DNA of 62,914 nt, the filler included, from Bigelowiella natans CCMP2755 (taxonomy: Eukaryota; Protista; Cercozoa), in assembly GCA_000320545.1 (NCBI GenBank). It is 8 parts of 8 records of this genome, joined end to end, with 100 filler letters (N's around TTAATTAATTAA, not from the genome) between each part and the next. Parts side by side here need not be neighbours in the genome. Positions count along the whole stretch, not along the records: positions 19,408 to 30,942 come from ADNK01000684.1; 7 more parts are not named here. One strand, 5' to 3'. The translations under genes and the position numbers were made by a program. The notes under the pieces are model-generated. The model saw only the letters and a list, made by a program, of their open reading frames with translations. It did not search any database and was not told the origin of the DNA. Positions 19,408-30,942 of the stretch are shown one piece after another (the stretch's first letter is position 1; every line of letters begins with the position of its first letter).

Positions 19408-19419
19408 CCCCCTCTCATT

Positions 19420-20601
19420 TATGGCAGATGGGCGCTTGCGAAGGCAAAGACATTGGAATCTCGCGGGAGAATCCGGGGGTGAAATCGGCTAGTTTCTACT
19501 GCGTACGTTGGCGTTGTGGTTATGCGGGAGAAGGGCAAGTTGCTGGTATTCGTATATCCTGATGATGAGGGGTTATGATGACGATGATGATGACGATAAA
19601 TTATGGGCGCACTCTTTCAAATACTGCCATAGAAGCATGGAACAGGAGAGAGGGGGAAAGAGCATGTTTTCGATTATGTGTGCGTATGCGTTGAGAGGGC
19701 GTACCCCATAATATTGATGCGACTTAACCCCCCCTCCCCACCCCTTATCTCTCTCCGTCGTTCATCTGTCTTGACGGTATAGCCGCGCTCTCTTCCACTC
19801 CTCCCCCATGCAACCTTGAGACGCAAACTGCGAGAAGATATCCCCACACCCTGGCAATACCAATAGAAATTAGAATTTTTACGGAAGACATCTAAGTGCA
19901 GACACTATTGCACGTGCAGCGAGTCATAACAGCGGTGGTTATGGCACGTGTTGGGGCTAAAGTCGTGCAAGAGAGACGGCGTCTCATTCTCATCAGAGTA
20001 TCCGTTACCAGAGAATCTCTTCACCGCCTCGCCCGGGAATTGGCCGTAAACGCATCGTTGAGTTACAACCTCATCGCCTGACAAGGAATTATTGGAAACA
20101 AAATAAGCGGGGATCGGAGGGAGGGGGGGGGAGCCTGAAAAGACTCGTGAATCTTTCCCAGAAGATGAGAAGGTGCGAAGATTTTATTAGGCCGAACAAG
20201 CGCTGGCAGCCCTGTTGCGTAGGTGCTCCTGCATTCTGCTACTACTCTCGAAGGAAGTCATTCATCCGTACTTGATGTGAGCGAAGCCAGAGAAGAGCAG
20301 CCGGTGGTAGACATTGTGCCTGTGCGACGATGAGCATTGAAAACCACGCAAATCGTGAGCGCGCGCATTCAGGGATCACTCACTCATCCGCTCGCTTTGT
20401 AGGGAGAGAAAGAGAGGAAGAGAGGAGGCGAGAGAAAGAGAACAACTACGCAAGGTACTCATTGAAGGTAGGGCTATCTCTGTTTCGGCCGCCATTGGTC
20501 GCTACCTGTCGTTCTGTACTGTTTTCGCATTGCAACGCCATTGGAGCACTCGTACGATACCTAGTAAACGTACGGAGAGCGAAGAGGCGAGAGAGAGGGG
20601 G

Positions 20602-20655
<54 letters not shown>

Positions 20656-21568
20656 CAATTTTAGAGGAACACCGTGTAAAGAGAGAGGGGGGGGGGGAAG
20701 GGAGGAGGTCGAATGTAATGTACCTGGTTTTGGTAACACCGATTTACTGCATAGATATTCAAGAACGAAAGCTCAGGCACTCCACTGATGGTGTTGTTGC
20801 CTATTTATGCAGCCAAATACGCTCAGCATCAGCATACGTAATATGCGTTTTTCGTCCAGAGACAGCATTGAAGTGTGGCAATGAAGCCAGTGTATTCAGT
20901 TACGTTTGTTCATTTTGATTTTTCGGGATCTTCCCTTTCCATTACCCACCCATTTTCTCGCCCTCTGTCTCTCTCTCTCTATCTCTCCCTCCCTCCCTCC
21001 CATATATAGATCCGACAAAGTTCTTGGGAATAGTACATGGGTTGGACGTCAGACTGGAGTCCACGTTCGTGTACACCGTTTCCACTCTGCCAATCCAAAC
21101 GAAAAGAAGAATGTAAGAAGAGGTGGGGGGAGGGGGGGAGGGAAGGATGGGAACTCTCGATCAAAGAAGAAGGCGGGAATAATCTACTCTAATTGATTCG
21201 GTTGTTGCGTGCTTGATTTCTGTATCATGGTGAGGTGCTCTTACAAAGGGAACTCGGAAGGGGTAAGCTCCTCGGCGGACACGAATTCTTACAAACCATA
21301 GAATAGGTATATCACTGGTAGTGCTAACACACGCTTTTCAGATGGTAACACAATGCTAAAGAAATGGTAGTAGGTGGGAATCGAATGTTTCCGGAAGCGA
21401 TACGGAGGTTTTTCCTTCTCATTCTCTTTATTATATATTTTATTTTGTTCCAGCATATTTTTGGCAGTGTTTAAGGAGGCACAAAACTATTTTACACCTG
21501 TGAAGTTATAGATTTGTAGGCAGAGTCCCGGTGCAACGGTATACTGTGCGGATAAACACATGCGCGCG

Positions 21569-21606
<38 letters not shown>

Positions 21607-21712
21607 AGGGAGAGAGAGAGAGAGAAAGTGGGGGGGGGGGGGCAAAAAAAAAAAAGCAAAATAGGGGGAAGACCAATAATAATTTCCCATCTATTTACCT
21701 CTCTTCCTGCCA

Positions 21713-21797
<85 letters not shown>

Positions 21798-22483
21798 TAC
21801 ATATGCTTTCGTGAGGAAGTGAGTGTTTCATGTTTTGTACATCCAAAATTTACCTGAGTGAGTAAAGTCGTACACGAAGCATCCGAAAATATCTGTCCAG
21901 AAACATCTGTGTTAAAACTTGTTGTTTCGGAGGAAGCGCGGGCAAAATCATGACAATAGATGGCTTCTTCTAGCCATAGGAAAAAGAGGCAAAAAATATG
22001 GACAAAAAACTGACTTTATAGTGAGTATCCGTCAGCATCAGGTAGTTTCCAGTTCTGATGGTGAGGATTAAGGTTAACATCGTAACGAGGGCAACTGATG
22101 AAAATTCTGATAGGCCAAACATCAAAGTTCCATATGATAATGATATGATCATTAAATGTAAACATATTTCGCAAGCCCAGATCCATTCCCATAGTCCCAT
22201 TGACGCATTCAAACGGTCTGAGCATACCCTTTCTGGCACCAGTCCTGTTGGATCAGCACTTCGTGCATCACCTCGCCTGCACAGCTGGCGGTGATATTGA
22301 AGCGTTAGCAGCTGTTACACGCAACACTCAATGAAAAACGTACTTGTTGTCCGGGAATTTTGTGAATCGACCCCATCTCACCGCATACGCAGGAGCGACG
22401 CAGTATGCTAGAATCAGAGCAATCACGAGAACGTGAGTCTTCGCCGGCAGTTGCCTCCTCAATCCAGCAGCCCTCATTACCAT
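19420..22483 (-). CDS. Secreted/surface cysteine-rich protein (multi-exon; 3' end uncertain)
   Basis: Signal peptide MVMRAAGLRRQLPAKTHVLVIALILAYCVAPAYA, then paired-Cys modules FTKFPDNNCAGEVMHEVLIQQDWCQK, QIFSDASCTTLLTQYTVAPGLCLQIYNF, VNRCYQNQVSYECSNG. Confidence 0.55.
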
Positions 22484-22659
22484 CGAAAAGCGGCAGGTGG
22501 CGACTGGTAAGGTGGGATGGAGAGCTAAATTTAGCGAGTAACTGAATTCGGAGATTTGCTATTGTGAATTTTCCCTACGACAATGAAATTAGACTTAAAA
22601 TTCGTGAAAATGGCCATGCCGTGCTATCTGATGTAGTGTAACGACGCATGTGTTGGCCA

Positions 22660-23599
22660 TGGCGTCTTCATTTCGACGAGAGTGTTCCCGATGTGTTGTG
22701 TGTGTTGCGGCGACGGAGGATTCGTGTCGATGAATGGTCGATGTTATCACGGTATATTGTGATCTAAATCCTTCGAAAGATCGCGAGGCCGACGGATTTT
22801 GACAAACCTTCATTTCAAACCCTAGTAGGAAAGTCCATCCACACAATGCCGTTCGTCTCGGAGGTTTGCCCCATTCGCTCCTTTGCTCGCTAGGCCCCCA
22901 CCCCTCCCCCAATAGCCCCCTATGATTATCATAAAATTGCTCCTCGGAAACCAAATGAATCGCCTGGGTGGCTGTATTTGGGTTAGCTTAGAGTGATGCG
23001 CACTTGTCAGGACGAATGTCATGACTTTTCTCTCCCTCCTCCTCCTCCTCCTCCTCCTCCTCCTCCTCCTTATTCTCTTTGTGCACAGTACCTGTTCCAC
23101 GCATGTTCCCTCCAATGCAACCCAAGCAGTACGTATCAGATGCTGGTGAGAAATGCATATCACTGCTGCTGTGACAGAATTGGCAAAATAGCATTCGTCT
23201 TTAACACATGTGTGGTGGACTTCGACTTCAGATACGGGGAGGCCGTGATTCGAGTGGGCATGAGAAAGAGATGTGAGCATCTCTAAGATAATCAAATGTA
23301 TATCCTTTTAACATATTCTTTTTTGTGCTTTTGCTCGCTCAGGGTCCAAGATAAAGAGTACTGCCTGAAGGTCATCTCGAATCCCCGATGTGTTGATTTT
23401 CGCCTAAAGGTTCGCTTTCAATGTCAACGGTAGGGATGCCGAAGTGCAGCTGATACGCTCGCGCAGGCTGACGAGAAAATTCTTCCACTTCCAGGGGTAA
23501 AGGCTTTCGATACTGTTTCTTCCCCCTTATCAACAATTTAAGCCAACAGCAAGGAAGTCGGTACTGTTTCGTCTTCGTCTCGACAGTACACGAAATCCG

Positions 23600-23663
<64 letters not shown>

Positions 23664-23962
23664 TCCTGGTGTCATTCCGAAAAGGATATAAGGAGAGGAA
23701 CTGTTGATTTGTGCAATTTAGGACCACAGCAGCATCCTGAAATCCAGAGGAAAGAAAGCAATAATTGTCAAGTCACAAGATGGATTATCGAAGCTGAAGA
23801 AAATTGCAGGCACTAAATGTCAGTCAGCATGCAAGAAGGTGGGTGAAACACATCATAAATTGCCATGTGAGTCGAAAATGATTAAACTCGCTCGATACAG
23901 GGAGAGGACTTCAAGGAGTGCTTCAAAGAGGTCATCGGGAAATGCTCTCACCCTGTGTGCTG
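22660..23962 (+). CDS. Possible small multi-exon hypothetical gene
   Basis: AG/GT-bounded open segments (IGKIAFVFNTCVVDFDFRYGEAVIR; VQDKEYCLK|ADEKILPLPG; DHSSILKSRGKKAIIVKSQDGLSKLKK; GEDFKECFKEVIGKCSHPVC*). No family recognised; start is a guess. Confidence 0.3.
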
Positions 23963-24422
23963 AAATTTAGAGTGTTACATCTATACTGTGTCCTGACATT
24001 CGTTGCTGCTAACTGTATGCATTTTTGTGTTTGAACACGTGGTACTTTCCTACGTCACCGTCAGTGCCACTCCGGGTCCGACAGTCTTTTCAGATTGTTG
24101 AAGCAAGTCATGTAGTCTCATCATCAACATTGTGCTGAAAAAGATCAAGTGCCCATGCAATCTCACTTCTGGCACGCGAACTACAAATTGTCGTGTTCAT
24201 GGTCAGCACTGAAGTTCTGAAATCATCTATTGTATAATTGCTAGCAAGACAGATGACAACACATGGAGACTGAGTCTCTGTGCGTGTGTGCATCATTTTG
24301 GATATATGGATCGATGATGTGGTGCTCCCGCACACATGTCTGTGCACTGTCTAGCTGTTCCGCAAAAGATGATTTCATTGTCACCCTGCATCCAGCCATG
24401 TTTCATGCACCGCAAGTCATGT

Positions 24423-25308
24423 GAGACGGATGTGATTTGTCAATTGAACTTGTTTGTATATTTGATGGCCATCCTTTCACCGCAAGTGCAGCCTGAGCTC
24501 ATTCGGATTGTGATTTCCACACATGCCGACGCTCCAATGTGCAGCAAACAGCAAAGGCAACACCAAAGCTTGCACAGGCGACAGAGCCGCCGTTGGTGCA
24601 AGCGAGGTGCAACGCAGTGCCCGCGACACATCAACTGCTCAGGCTCTGGGAGCTTGACCAGCGTCGGGCATTGCAGCAGAGTTTTCTCGGCAACAAGAGG
24701 TCGGCTGGAACTGATCGAGCTAGCGAGGTTGAGCTCAATTGAAGCCCCCTGAGTCCGCTCCTCAAAATGGCTCAAGCACAACAACAAGTTCCCCAAAGTC
24801 CTCTCACCTTTCACTTTTTGTGAAAATGCGCCCGTTTGTGTTTGGCTGGCAGCGCGCACACGTTTTGGAGGAAGAAGAAGGACCAGAGGAGAAGAAGAAG
24901 AAGAAGACAGAAGTGACACCGTTGGAGCGGTTGAAAGGATCAGGGGACACGCTGACTCATCGGTGCCTTCCCACACCAATTGCCTGGTGCTTCGACAGGC
25001 GATCGGTTGAAACACTGAAACACCAGGTTCAAGGTCGATCCAAGATTCGTGTGTTCGTTCGATGCTCGATTCCAACAAGACAATCGTTGACAATGATTGA
25101 TTGATTTGTCCTCATGAAATGAATGGATGAACGAATGAATGAAGCAAAGCGAGCCGGTGGAAAGAAAGAATGAAACAAACTTCGTTGATCAACGAGCCGT
25201 CACTCTGATCAATCGCTTCGGATCACAGCCACTCGCCGGCCAGTCATCTGAGAAGAAGAAAGTGGAGAAATGATGATGTCTCCATCTGCAAACCCCGTTC
25301 ATTTTCTT
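24423..25308. mobile_element. Decayed element starting with a copy of the GAGACGGATGTAA terminal repeat; TpA-depleted coding relic
   Basis: GAGACGGATGTGA at 24423 matches the TIR family at 37193/54408; only one TA in 24461-25308. Confidence 0.55.
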
Positions 25309-25575
25309 TATTCAAATTTACAAAATTTGTCGGTAAATATCTTGTCGTACTCCGAAAGAGGGGTACCCTTCACAATTTGTGGCTTGGGTGGATTTGCCAG
25401 CAGAGAAAATCATGAAGAGAGCCGTTCCAGCAGTTTTCCGAAGATAAAAGTAGAAGGATAATGTATATAGCGACAAGGAAATATTCTCCAAAAAAACCTT
25501 AAATTCGGTCTGAAAATGCCTTTTGGGCTCGCCGATCTCGGTGACTATTACTGAACACTTATCGTTTACGAGTCG

Positions 25576-26814
25576 ATGGTGATGATGAGTAGTGTCCCCC
25601 GTTCGTCCCTTCTCGTTTTCACCCTCTCCCTCGCGCCAGCGTTATGTTCCCCAGCCTCTCCCAACGCCAATTTTGGGTCTGCAACTAGAGTAAGTGGGGG
25701 GGCTTTGAGAAGGGGAAAATTTGCTCGCAGATCCGGGAGCGGCATTCGGCATGTGTCACAGAGGTTGCGTGCCCTTAACGCTGCGTCACCTAAAGCTCCA
25801 AGGCAGGAGATAACACGCACCCTCTCAAAATTTGAAAGGGCGTGGAAGGATGCGGCAGCTAGTGCAGCTGTAGGTCTTGCAATGCTGGCTGGTGCTTCGA
25901 TGGGTAATCTCCCAGCTATGGCAGGAGAAGTAGCCGGTGCTCCTGCCGCTGCACAGACTGAGCAAATTAATATGGATGCCCTGAAATCGATGACGAAAGA
26001 TGCCATTGATAAGGGATACGACCAAGCTTGGATTGATGATCATCTCGCTCAGATGGAGGCACGTGGATACGATATCGAATGGGTGCAGCAACACCTGAGC
26101 GGTGTGGTGGATGAAATGAAGAAGAAATCCGAAGTAAGTTCCGATAACATGATGTTCAAAAATCTCCAGGAAGGAGAGGCTCCTAAGAAGCTTGAAAGCG
26201 ACCGTGTAGTATCAACTATTCCGCGAACGAATGCTGAGGGGCTACCCGTTCACCAAGAGGGCTTAGAAGGGATCGACAACTGGGTATACCCTTCACCAAA
26301 AATGTTTTGGAACGCAATGGACAGGAAGGGCAAGCATCCGGAGAGATATAATCCAGAGGATATCTCTGGTGTGGTACGCATCCACAACTTTGTCAACGAG
26401 AAAGCCTGGAATGAAATCCTGAAGTGGGAGGCAATGCACGAGGACAGCTGCCCGAAAGGCCCTTCGTTGACTAGCTTCAAGGGCAAATACGACAAGCTTT
26501 CTGCCAAGGGGGCAATGAATAAGTACGTTCCGGGGATGATGGGAGCTCCTTTCGACAGACACGACTGGGTGATTAATCGATGCGGGAAAACTGTGAGGTA
26601 TGTCCTGGACTACTATAAGGACCCTTCCCTTGCGGAGGATCCTAAGATTCGACTCGACGTGAGACCGGCACCGGACAGCATTGACAACCTTGTTGATTGG
26701 GTGAAATACTCGTCATACTCTAAGAATGCACCAGATAGAAAGGTGTCTTTCGAAGAGACAACGCGAATGAAAACCGCTAATGAGGTCATGAACTCTATTA
26801 GCAAGACGAATTAG
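25576..26814 (+). CDS. HCCS: Holocytochrome c synthase (cytochrome c/c1 heme lyase, System III), intronless, with tripartite plastid/thylakoid-lumen-like leader
   Basis: 412-aa single ORF with HCCS motifs RVVSTIPR, NWVYPSPKMFWNAMDRKG, VVRIHNFVNEKAWNEILKWE (heme-ligand His), PFDRHDWVINRCG, VRYVLDYY, LDVRPA. The first ~116 aa form a hydrophobic signal, an acid-free Arg-rich transit region, and a second hydrophobic segment ending P-A-M-A. Confidence 0.96.
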   Translation: MVMMSSVPRSSLLVFTLSLAPALCSPASPNANFGSATRVSGGALRRGKFARRSGSGIRHVSQRLRALNAASPKAPRQEITRTLSKFERAWKDAAASAAVGLAMLAGASMGNLPAMAGEVAGAPAAAQTEQINMDALKSMTKDAIDKGYDQAWIDDHLAQMEARGYDIEWVQQHLSGVVDEMKKKSEVSSDNMMFKNLQEGEAPKKLESDRVVSTIPRTNAEGLPVHQEGLEGIDNWVYPSPKMFWNAMDRKGKHPERYNPEDISGVVRIHNFVNEKAWNEILKWEAMHEDSCPKGPSLTSFKGKYDKLSAKGAMNKYVPGMMGAPFDRHDWVINRCGKTVRYVLDYYKDPSLAEDPKIRLDVRPAPDSIDNLVDWVKYSSYSKNAPDRKVSFEETTRMKTANEVMNSISKTN

Positions 26815-27049
26815 CCGATTAGTTCTCCCGTGCTGACCTTTCAGAAATGGAGGCGTGGTTGATGCATGTACAATTCTTGTTTTGTTCGATATTCAACTCA
26901 AAGCTTTCCGAAGAATAAATATATATATCCTATTTTAATACACCACAATGTAAATTCAATGCTAAAAATTCTGAAGAAAAACGAAAGCAATGCATTTTGT
27001 TTGTATCAAGCCAAGATTAATGTAGTAGAGTCTAAATCTCGATCTTATC

Positions 27050-28440
27050 TGTGTTGCAATTGTCACATCGCATGGATGATGACCTTTTGTGAACATTCTG
27101 TCCGCATGTCCCGCATGCTAGCATGTGCAAGTTGTTAAAAGCTGTGAGTAAGAATGAAGCTATTCTTCGGTCATTTCACTGCTCTGACAGTTACACTTTG
27201 TCTCTGGCGGGTTAGCTTTTCAGTGACAACTGTCGGCGTCAAATGTGCGCAAAATTCAAAACTATGGTGATGAACAGATTTTGGCATTTCCATCACTAGA
27301 TCACATTGTGCCCGCTTGACAAATTTCTCTGTCGTGTTTGAATTCAGTATGCAGAATGTCCATGATAGATGATCCCACTTAGACGTGTGCATGCACACTG
27401 TAGGCGAGACGTGCGAGCTAGCGAGAGCATGCTGCATGGATGTGGACAACAAGCTCTCTAGCTCTGTCCGACGCACGTGTTGAATCATTTGATGTTTGAC
27501 TGTGTCCATCGTTATAAGATCGTTGCTCATGGCGTACCTTTTGATGAACTTTGTGAGATCGATCACTTGCTCATTCCAGCATCATCGTATCGTGGGTCGC
27601 AGGATGAAGTGTTTGAATTCTGAAAATGTGTTGGTTCAGCACGCCCAAACGACACTGTGCTGCACATGAGCGAACCAAGCCGCTGCACGTTCACTCCATC
27701 TCCTCAAGGCCACAGTGTCATGATCGATCCGAGATCAACGAGAAGGGCAATGCTGGCGATGTGCAGTGCAGACGTGCACAGCTCGTTGCTGTTGTGCGCC
27801 AATTTGATTGGACGTGGCGACACTCTGTCCATAGGGACTTGTAGTCCATGTAGGGACTCATAGTCCATGCACATCCGAGGTGTCTAGGTGTGTCAAATCA
27901 GATGCCATGCGGTCCATCTGATGCTCGGCTCAAACGCAACGAACGCAAACCCATCACTAGATCACCAGATCACTTGCGGTTTTTGTCGCTGCTGCCATTC
28001 GCATCAGAATCGAACTCATGTCCAGCAGGTGTCCGTAAACGTGCTAGCGCGACAGCAGAGCTGTCATCATCGCAGCGCACAAGATCTCGCACAACGTCCA
28101 AAAGTCTGCACCCGCTCACGTTGACCGCAAACACGCACGCAGAACGTGCCGCGGATCATGCGGGCAATGTGTGGGCAAAAGATGCCTTCGGTTTCCAGTG
28201 TCAGCTGGGTGTCTGCGACACGTTTGATCAGTTTCTTCGAAACCTACCACCAGGCAGGGGCGACTCTGCGATCATGAGCCAGCATGCGAACCAGGCACGA
28301 GACAGAGGGTGGACAAAATATCTTCAAGGAGGAACCAATGAATGAATGAAGAAAGAGTGGTGGCTCCACTCCTGGGACAATGAACAATGAACAATGATGA
28401 CAAACAACATTTCCAAAATGTTGCAATGCAGTGCCTCGAA
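27050..28440. pseudogene. TpA-eroded relic coding/repeat sequence (TE- or virus-derived?)
   Basis: Overlapping Tyr-poor, Cys/His-rich ORFs on both strands; 9 TA in 27591-28318, 8 of them in TAG/CTA context. Confidence 0.45.
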
Positions 28441-28604
28441 ACTAACTTCAGTGAGAGCGGACTGCTCGTAGGATCCATTTCCGTCCCTTTGAGTCTTGAG
28501 TGAACGTCTTGAACATAATTTGGATGTCGTAACAATGAAATGTAGGCAATTTATAGGAAAATTACCAACAACTTCAGAACACAAAGCCTTCCCGCCTCAG
28601 CGCC

Positions 28605-29390
28605 ATGGCAAACCTGGGGAGAGGGGGTGAGGATGTGGAGGAAGACGCCTTGCTAAGGCTGCACTTCAGCCTTGATTCCTCCACGACCGCTAGGAATTCG
28701 TTTCTACAGATGTACGGAATCCACGGCAGGCGAGGGACGTACAGCTTCGAAGATGAAGCACTTTTGGAGAGCAAACCAGAGTTTCGTACTGACGATCTCC
28801 TTGGGAAGCCCCGTGTCCTAGATGTCGAAACCCTACCAGGGAGATTGCACGCGTCTGAGAAATCATCGTATTATTCCATGGAGACAGATGGAGGAGGAGG
28901 AGGAGGAGGAGGAGGAGGAGGAGGTGCGGGTAACCAAGCGTTTCAGGATTTCATGAAGCTATGGAAGACCGGTGGCAATATCGCTAGGATTTCTAGAGGG
29001 CTCGAGACTATAACCGAGCCGGAATGGAGTGAATCTATTGAGTCTGGATTGTTTGATGAATCCCCGATAGAGGATGTTTTCCGCGTCCTCGATCTAGTCG
29101 CTGGAAAAGCAATCGGAGATGCTGTCCTGAAGCATATCTTCCGTCTTGTTCCCGACAACATCGAGGAGAAGGGAGCCCAAACGCAGCACTCATTTCGAAG
29201 CCTCATCTGGACTGCCATACAGAAGGGCTCCGCCATCTCGCTTCCCAAGGAAAAGTTCGTCCGACATGTACAAACCTCTACGCGCTACTGTGAGAAGGAA
29301 TCTGCCACGATTTCGAAGGCAAAGTGGATTTTCTCTGCATTCTGTGAAGCTTATTTGAAAATCAGATTGAGCGCGAGCACATTCAAATGA
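28605..29390 (+). CDS. Intronless hypothetical protein (261 aa) with poly-Gly linker
   Basis: Long ATG-to-TGA ORF with protein-like composition including Tyr codons, GCC-ATG-G start context and an in-frame (GGA)n tract; no family recognised. Confidence 0.65.
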   Translation: MANLGRGGEDVEEDALLRLHFSLDSSTTARNSFLQMYGIHGRRGTYSFEDEALLESKPEFRTDDLLGKPRVLDVETLPGRLHASEKSSYYSMETDGGGGGGGGGGGGAGNQAFQDFMKLWKTGGNIARISRGLETITEPEWSESIESGLFDESPIEDVFRVLDLVAGKAIGDAVLKHIFRLVPDNIEEKGAQTQHSFRSLIWTAIQKGSAISLPKEKFVRHVQTSTRYCEKESATISKAKWIFSAFCEAYLKIRLSASTFK

Positions 29391-29639
29391 TCAATATTTT
29401 CTATTTATTTTCTTAAAAATGAGCTAATGAATAAGTGCATTGAGCAGTTCATGTCATCTTGAATCATCACCTCTCTGCGATCCTGATGCAGCAACCGAAC
29501 TCGATAAGCGATATATACATGTGATGTCTGCTTGTCATGTCTGAGAAAAAACAAGAAGGATCGTTGCGGTCGTGTAAGTAAAGCGATTTCTGTGAAAAAA
29601 TGTTTTCGAGAATGGCATCTTAGTAAATAGCCCAAGTAA

Positions 29640-30350
29640 GCAACGGCACTTTGCTTCTTCGCATGCTACGGCACGGCTAGCACACATATTGTAATTAGCT
29701 CACAGACGCTCACACATATTATTAGGTGTGCTCATCTTCTCTGTCCTTTTGAAAGACCTCTACTTTCTTAGTCATTTGATAAGCGGTGTGCTAACAATAA
29801 GAAGTGTGAACAATTTCATAGCAGTCATAATTATTATACCTCGCGTATACGCTGATCGATAACAATAAGGAAGTTGCACAAGTGCAATGCCGCCGCCAGC
29901 CACTTAACGCATCCACGCCTCGTGGTCATTACTAGATCAGCAATGCTGACGAATTATTCATCACACATTAATAACACACGCCTTCATGCATTATGTTGCA
30001 TTGCAAGAAGGCGGAGCTGCGGGGATGTGATGTGCCCGCGCAGCGTAGCTAGCAGCAGCTGTTCAAGCAGTACTGAGCACAAAATCGTTTTGCATAGCTA
30101 CATTAGGATGACAATTGAACAAGTTTGATTTATCCATGACATCCGATGTGCACCGCGATCGCTTGTGCATGCCGCGCTTGCTACTCTCGCGAAACAATTG
30201 TCTCATCATTCATTCCCCAGCGATTCATCATACACAGAACCAGCATTAAAATACACACGCTTCCTGCTGATTAGATGAGCTTTTACGCAAGATGAAGCAA
30301 GTCGCTAAATTCGTCGTTGAGCAGCTAGCAGCTGCAGACGAGAGCTTTCA
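29640..30350. repeat. Degenerate TG/CA-rich intergenic tract
   Basis: Same word pattern as the other eroded tracts, lying between convergent 3' ends. Confidence 0.4.
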
Positions 30351-30356
30351 ATCGCG

Positions 30357-30757
30357 CTAGGAATCGAAGTCGTCGCTGTATTCGTCATTCTCGTCGTTGT
30401 TATCCCTCGCCATGATGTCTTCTTCTTCTACTACTATACTGTCGCTGATGCCGAGCGCGTCCTCAGCGTCCTCAGCACCCTATTTTTACGCAGCAGACGT
30501 CAAATGCACACATTAATACTTTTCGCACTTTACAGCATTTAGTAGTACGTCATGCAACGGGGAAAGACGATAGGCGAATGAACAACAGTAGGAAGCACCG
30601 AGCCATAAAAGCTAGGCACCTCTGCTTGATGAAATTATAATAGAAAAATGGGGGCGAGGGGTATGCTGAGCAAGGAGGCCTCAGGTTCATCCATGTGGTC
30701 AACTACCTCATCATTCTCGCTCCCGCCGATATCAATATCGACGATCTCGATGTCCTA
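30357..30757 (-). CDS. 3'-terminal acidic exons of a gene interrupted by the gap
   Basis: DIEIVDIDIGGSENDE ... GAEDAEDALGISDSIVVEEEDIMARDNNDENDEYSDDFDS* with AG acceptors. Confidence 0.4.
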
Positions 30758-30855
30758 CATATTTAGCAGTTTATGTGTGAGTGCTTTGTGTCAGATTCTC
30801 CCTTCTCCTCCTCCTCCTCCTTACCCTCCTCCTCCCTCCTCTCTTTCTCGAAACA

Positions 30856-30940
<85 letters not shown>

Positions 30941-30942
30941 AC

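Follow-up and report, generated by a model that had tools for sequence, protein, structure and literature searches.

The window analysed here, a stretch of 62,914 nucleotides from the genome of Bigelowiella natans CCMP2755 (GCA_000320545.1), contains a complete gene for a holocytochrome c synthase (HCCS), the heme lyase of System III, with a long three-part leader ahead of its catalytic core. The gene lies in the piece at positions 19408–30942 (ADNK01000684.1), which is eukaryotic nuclear DNA with a GC content of ~47% and many microsatellites. Its features suggest a chlorarachniophyte nuclear gene for an HCCS whose destination has been changed to the complex plastid. We see about an even chance that the encoded lyase is directed to the thylakoid lumen, where it would mature cytochrome c6 and/or cytochrome f. 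Judged by its sequence, the protein truly belongs to the HCCS family, and its architecture and predicted compartment are new.

The open reading frame (ORF) begins at the first start codon after an in-frame stop (Table 1). PF01265 (Cyto_heme_lyase) is the only Pfam family in the 412-residue product and covers residues 179–374 (E 2e-40; score 139.7 bits, cutoff 23.8). The EukProt/MetaClust protein P0266 has exactly the same sequence as this product, and the product of a complete MMETSP transcript (P0001) shares 99.5% identity with it. The two residues that differ, A31G and R51S (codons 25666–25668 and 25726–25728), both fall in the leader. Because the transcript product matches the genomic ORF save for these two residues, the gene has no introns in this genome. 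Contigs from marine-sample RNA libraries cover positions 25582–26987, starting six bases past the ATG with none upstream, and vary in the leader-coding DNA at 25638, 25660, and 25726; such contigs are not by themselves proof of transcription and are unable to show transcript starts. Together these results show a real, expressed leader-bearing HCCS gene whose translation begins at the start given in Table 1.

Table 1. The leader-bearing HCCS gene of B. natans and the parts of its product. Positions are those of the window; residues are those of the precursor.
Feature	Position	Strand	Basis or remark
Leader-bearing HCCS gene, 412 residues, complete, intronless	25576..26814, stop codon included	+	ORF, PF01265, P0266, P0001
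Predicted endoplasmic reticulum (ER)-type signal peptide, residues 1–25	25576..25650	+	Hydrophobic core SLLVFTLSLAPAL, small residues at ALC|S
Transit-peptide-like region, residues 26–90	25651..25845	+	Basic, Ser/Ala/Gly-rich, first acidic residue E78
Second hydrophobic Ala/Gly-rich domain ending in A-M-A, residues 91–116	25846..25923	+	Candidate Sec-type thylakoid-transfer domain, putative cleavage before G117
Clade-specific three-helix module, residues 117–185	25924..26130	+	Replaces the Cys-Pro (CP) motif region of canonical HCCS
HCCS catalytic core, residues 186–380	26131..26715	+	Pfam, invariant columns, H270, E275, R328/H329
Clade-conserved C-terminal tail (SFEETT.M.TA..V), residues 381–412	26716..26811	+	Invariant residues, helical in the model

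The catalytic core is intact, as the original prediction had proposed from the motifs it quoted, all of which are present (NWVYPS...FWNAM.RKG, IHNFVNEKAW, FDRHDW, RYVLDYY, and LDVRPA). In an alignment of 147 HCCS proteins, H270 of the IHN motif and R328–H329 of FDRHDW are invariant and E275 of NE.AW is nearly so. All four residues (H154, E159, R212, and H213 in mature numbering) are invariant within the chlorarachniophyte clade described below. The histidine of the IHN motif is the heme ligand in human HCCS. An AlphaFold2 model of the protein reached an overall predicted local distance difference test (pLDDT) score of 88.5, with values mostly above 90 in the catalytic core. Neither a sequence search against PDB chains (E <= 0.01) nor a Foldseek search against the PDB (E <= 0.001) returned a match.

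The leader comprises ~116 residues in three parts. A hydrophobic signal stands at the N-terminus, a basic stretch follows, and a hydrophobic stretch rich in Ala and Gly, with an A-x-A motif at its end, completes it. The residue counts given in the original prediction are exact, with 11 Arg or Lys (positions 38, 45, 46, 48, 51, 52, 58, 63, 65, 73, and 76) and no Asp or Glu between residues 26 and 77, E78 being the first acidic residue. The two hydrophobic segments span residues ~7–27 and 92–110, and A114-M-A116 stands directly before G117. The leader has, by sequence, each element of a lumen-type tripartite presequence: an ER signal (by hydropathy), an acid-poor basic region, and a hydrophobic A-x-A transfer domain.

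Full-length relatives of the window protein fall into five clusters, all of them chlorarachniophyte and together representing four genera (Bigelowiella-type, Partenskyella, Lotharella, and Amorphochlora). These include P0002, which is 88% identical to the window protein, and the orthologues of Partenskyella glossopodia (P0003/P0267; taxid 552666), Lotharella oceanica and L. globosa (P0004, P0296), and Amorphochlora amoebiformis (P0005/P0300). The protein searches gave the best 120–150 of 1400–1900 matches. Among the matches listed, the E-value drops past the clade from 1e-142 to 1e-41 in a set of 5.8 billion proteins, and from 2e-159 to 1e-43 in an exhaustive search of representatives. The gene of A. 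amoebiformis (L003 10001–19979) is split into at least ~13 exons over 10 kb, the first of which spans the whole leader. Its NCBI model P0005 is probably missing an exon, since a core segment of ~20 residues that it lacks stands in the transcript-derived P0300.

The design of the leader is kept across these genera, which bears out the expectation that it would be conserved in orthologues, while its sequence is only 16–26% identical to the window protein between genera. A hydrophobic core within residues ~6–25, followed by small residues, was found by hydropathy in all five full-length orthologues, and all five have the second hydrophobic segment with its A-x-A motif (AMA, ALA, AFA, ALA, and AFA). 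The middle stretch is similarly net-positive and acid-poor in the orthologues, although P0002 has one early Asp (D40). Conservation rises sharply immediately behind the A-x-A site, and the core is 80–86% identical to the window protein between genera (80–96% among complete clade sequences). A leader that diverges this fast ahead of a conserved core is what marks a cleaved targeting sequence. Despite this divergence, both the reading frame and the three-part design have been preserved. In a Partenskyella-type transcript (L084), the start is preceded two codons upstream by an in-frame stop; hence the leader is translated and no N-terminus is truncated.

A comparison with other HCCS proteins sets the N-terminus of the clade apart. 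About 390 relatives from outside the clade were gathered, of which 277 were covered by a scan for N-terminal signals and CP heme-regulatory motifs. The mean N-terminal Kyte–Doolittle hydropathy (15-residue window) is 1.7–2.6 in the full-length orthologues, compared with a median of 0.26 in the 277 others. Only three of the latter reach 1.7 or more, namely one fragment, one fusion to a TLC domain, and one pelagophyte protein with CP motifs and a twin CX9C extension at its C-terminus. The combination of a hydrophobic N-terminal signal with loss of the CP motifs occurs in none of the 277. The clade has no CP motifs N-terminal of the core, in agreement with the original prediction, whereas the canonical HCCS listed mostly have two to four.

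Between the leader and the core lies a module of 69 residues with two copies of the repeat [KR]GYD..W[IV]..HL, each containing an invariant His. Its three helices were modelled at residues 124–146, 150–162, and 167–185. Identity in the module is 64–86% within the clade and 64–71% to the window protein between genera. A search with residues 1–185 found no relatives beyond the five chlorarachniophyte clusters, and neither a relaxed Pfam scan nor an Atlas feature search gave a significant match to the module. At the other end of the protein, residues F392, E393, T395, M398, T400, and V404 of the tail are invariant in the clade, and this tail is absent from canonical HCCS. No CcsA or ResB-type membrane domain was found in the product by Pfam, and the model shows no transmembrane bundle in the mature part.

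The phylogeny shows accelerated divergence followed by constraint. The clade has 100% support in the trees, with a stem of 0.9–1.4 substitutions per site and crown branches of 0.02–0.18. A long stem leading to a short crown indicates a burst of change and then tight constraint, as would be expected after a change of substrate or compartment. In the trees the clade is placed weakly with HCCS of the alveolate type. The original prediction had proposed that a host paralogue of the heme lyase was re-routed; a host origin of the stramenopile–alveolate–rhizarian (SAR) type is weakly indicated by the trees, and support for the sister group is weak. An origin from the green-algal endosymbiont was also considered and is not favoured, as the clade does not group with green algae, with support too weak to make a call.

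The window protein resembles the mitochondrial HCCS/CCHL (System III, PF01265) in its catalytic domain, in all conserved motifs including the heme-ligand His of IHN, and in acting as a single subunit. Core identity to animal, fungal, green-algal, and alveolate proteins is 35–50%. It differs in carrying the ~116-residue leader, canonical HCCS having no cleavable signal, and in the clade's lack of CP motifs, three-helix module, C-terminal tail, and very long stem. It differs also in its predicted compartment, the plastid rather than the mitochondrial intermembrane space. It is unrelated in sequence to plastid System II (CcsA/Ccs1 with CCDA and CCS5/HCF164). The latter, a multi-pass membrane complex, has heme export as a further function; the window protein, by comparison, is predicted to be a soluble or peripheral single protein without a heme channel. 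The order of signal peptide, transit peptide, and hydrophobic A-x-A domain is that of the tripartite leaders borne by lumen proteins of algae with complex plastids (PMC3774753), from which the window leader departs in its lack of a twin arginine and in the mixed charge before the transfer domain.

A different SAR-lineage addition is found in ochrophytes. The HCCS of Aureoumbra lagunensis (P0236; L089 35–1339), together with P0207 and ~11 other HCCS matches (from A. lagunensis, Discosporangium, and others), has a C-terminal twin CX9C extension, which appears to be a lineage-specific HCCS fusion. The cysteine pattern is that of substrates for import into the intermembrane space, so the extension reinforces mitochondrial targeting. 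P0236 and the chlorarachniophyte clade have the RKGK and VRPAPDS signatures in common. The ochrophyte proteins, in contrast, have kept their CP motifs, and their extension is the opposite solution to an N-terminal leader of the plastid type.

Plastid proteins of chlorarachniophytes require a signal peptide as well as a transit-like one (PMC10927497, PMC3542566). For the window protein, we infer that the N-terminal signal peptide would bring the precursor into the ER and the secretory route, and that the basic, acid-free transit-like region would see it through the inner plastid membranes to the stroma. Translocation of the catalytic part over the thylakoid membrane would then fall to the second hydrophobic A-x-A domain, along a path that we assume to be of the Sec type because there is no twin arginine. 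Cleavage would probably take place in the lumen before G117 and would leave a mature enzyme of ~296 residues. There, the conserved His of IHN would bind heme, and the enzyme would attach it to the CXXCH motif in cytochrome c6 and perhaps also in cytochrome f. Such a lyase would work alongside System II or take its place, chlorarachniophytes having lost the plastid gene ccsA of that system.

Both the loss of ccsA and the dependence of B. natans on cytochrome c6 give indirect support to a replacement of System II. Only three genes, ccsA among them, have disappeared from plastid genomes in every one of the three green secondary endosymbioses; chlorarachniophyte plastids are thus without it, and it was not detected in the nucleus of B. 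natans either (bioRxiv 10.1101/2021.05.27.446077). Lepidodinium and the euglenophytes, the remaining green secondary lineages, have also lost ccsA. A plastocyanin gene is missing from B. natans, which relies on cytochrome c6 (PMC7883536), and c6 was detected in its plastid fraction (PMC3542566). The same plastid-fraction proteome also includes a cytochrome c peroxidase with a signal and a transit peptide (PMC3542566), which would be another usually mitochondrial type of heme protein in the plastid complex. In its strongest form, which we hold to be possible but rather doubtful, System III, a single-protein lyase invented by eukaryotes, would have fully replaced the cyanobacterial System II in the chlorarachniophyte lumen. 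This would make it the first plastid known in which c6 and f are matured by a mitochondrial-type HCCS, with the module serving in heme hand-off or membrane docking. The three helices with their two His repeats would then provide what CcsBA formerly did.

Several points weigh against a lumen-directed lyase. HCCS has a narrow substrate recognition, and cytochrome f has no obvious N-terminal helix like that of cytochrome c. The signal peptide was called from hydropathy and small-residue patterns. Acidic residues (E78, E87, and D92) lie just ahead of the second hydrophobic domain and a twin arginine is absent, so this domain could be a membrane anchor and not a transfer signal that is cleaved off. 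That Ccs1, CcdA, and a nuclear ccsA are absent is reported from the BLAST survey of one paper. The B. natans plastid proteome paper (PMC3542566) does not mention the leader-bearing HCCS in its main text. A mitochondrial or dual role would be needed if the genome had no other HCCS.

Overall, the interpretation as a lumen heme lyase is partly supported, and the findings do not contradict it. The leader is real, clade-specific, and conserved in design, and it fits the rules for plastid and lumen presequences; the missing twin arginine and the acidic residues before the transfer domain stand on the other side. The original prediction knew of no description of such a system, and the literature library searched likewise yielded no paper linking chlorarachniophytes or Bigelowiella to a heme lyase of this kind. 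The iron-proteome supplement lists no heme lyase.

The main alternative, which we regard as unlikely, is a mitochondrial HCCS acting in the intermembrane space, with a cleavable bipartite presequence made of a matrix-targeting part and a stop-transfer domain that is cut by the inner-membrane peptidase. A basic acid-free stretch followed by a hydrophobic A-x-A domain is indeed the design of bipartite intermembrane-space presequences such as those of cytochrome b2 or c1, and the inner-membrane peptidase that cuts these is a relative of signal peptidases. The window leader has such a sorting-like domain, but its N-terminus is strongly hydrophobic (1.7–2.6 in the orthologues): a hydrophobic core of about a dozen or more residues starts every full-length orthologue, and mitochondrial presequences have none. 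Furthermore, the use of a signal peptide is not known for mitochondrial preproteins of B. natans, according to the proteome paper (PMC3542566). A long stem, a new module, and the loss of the CP motifs would be unexpected if the old substrates had been kept. Reviews, on the other side, place System III only in mitochondria and System II in plastids (PMC5526843, PMC10879542).

A mitochondrial role would also fit the fact that a separate leaderless HCCS was not seen. No protein labelled as chlorarachniophyte, apart from the clade itself, stands among the best 120–150 of 1400–1900 matches, which were obtained with no taxon filter and are not evidence of absence; an unseen paralogue among the best 120–150 of more than 1400 matches says little against the plastid. 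A metagenome scan gave, among the matches listed, only canonical HCCS of unknown origin. Tracing Logan and JGI contigs to their samples tied no canonical HCCS to a chlorarachniophyte one, which again is not evidence of absence. P0236 was picked as a candidate leaderless chlorarachniophyte HCCS for its clade-like signatures and was rejected as a pelagophyte protein.

It is quite improbable, in our view, that one gene serves both organelles, with the plastid receiving the full precursor and mitochondria importing, by internal HCCS signals, a shorter form made from an internal start (Met133, for instance) or from an alternative transcript start. Mitochondria need a lyase, and the failure to find a second HCCS among the matches listed is weak evidence in the same direction. 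A product starting at M133 would have 280 residues, the usual size of HCCS. The conservation of M133 is uninformative, because every residue of its block is invariant. No internal transcript start or joint was seen, in contigs that cannot show starts, and a core this divergent points to one specialised role.

The protein might instead reside in the plastid complex outside the lumen, either in the periplastidal compartment or anchored in the envelope or thylakoid membrane and facing away from the lumen, with another role such as heme binding or handling. We give this a low probability. Amorphochlora presequences of a similar type lead to the stroma or the periplastidal compartment (PMC10927497), and both the acidic residues at the end of the transit-like region and the possibility that the second hydrophobic domain is a membrane anchor would suit such a location. 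However, outside the lumen there is no known c-type cytochrome substrate, and the catalytic residues are strongly constrained; the occurrence of the hydrophobic stretch with A-x-A in all orthologues better fits a lumen signal. Although an N-terminal signal alone sends a protein to the ER, it is highly improbable that the signal peptide is the only functional part of the leader, the rest being a disordered linker, and that the protein acts in endomembranes or is non-functional there, given that all genera retain both the basic stretch without acidic residues and the second hydrophobic A-x-A domain, that no ER substrate is known, and that the mature domain is under strong purifying selection.

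The DNA around the HCCS gene is rich in repeats. Dense microsatellites of the types (GA)n, (CA)n, (AT)n, (CCT)n, and (AC)n lie on both sides of it (20589–20650, 21571–21804, 23035–23070, 23601–23663, and 30853–30942), and the long ORFs that run across them are repeat artefacts. An Rfam scan of the piece 19408–30942 gave zero matches. An ORF of 261 residues at 28605–29390 (+) encodes roughly a dozen consecutive Gly (GGA repeat at 28890–28924), has no Pfam match, and may be an exon-containing neighbour gene. Over the leader-coding region, an antisense ORF at 25566–26006 (−) would encode 146 residues; its high Ala content mirrors the richness of the sense strand in Ala and Gly, and it is in all likelihood not a gene.

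A lumen-directed HCCS, if this reading of the B. natans gene is true, would break the rule that System III belongs to mitochondria and System II to plastids. It could explain how cytochromes c6 and f, which are needed for photosynthesis, are produced in a plastid lineage without ccsA. Amorphochlora can be transformed with GFP fusions (PMC10927497), and a heme route to the lumen without CcsBA would become directly testable. A single soluble lyase for photosynthetic c-type cytochromes would also be a useful tool for heterologous expression. For the chlorarachniophytes themselves, it would provide a clean natural case in which a pathway of organelle biogenesis was swapped for a host-derived one in the course of secondary endosymbiosis.

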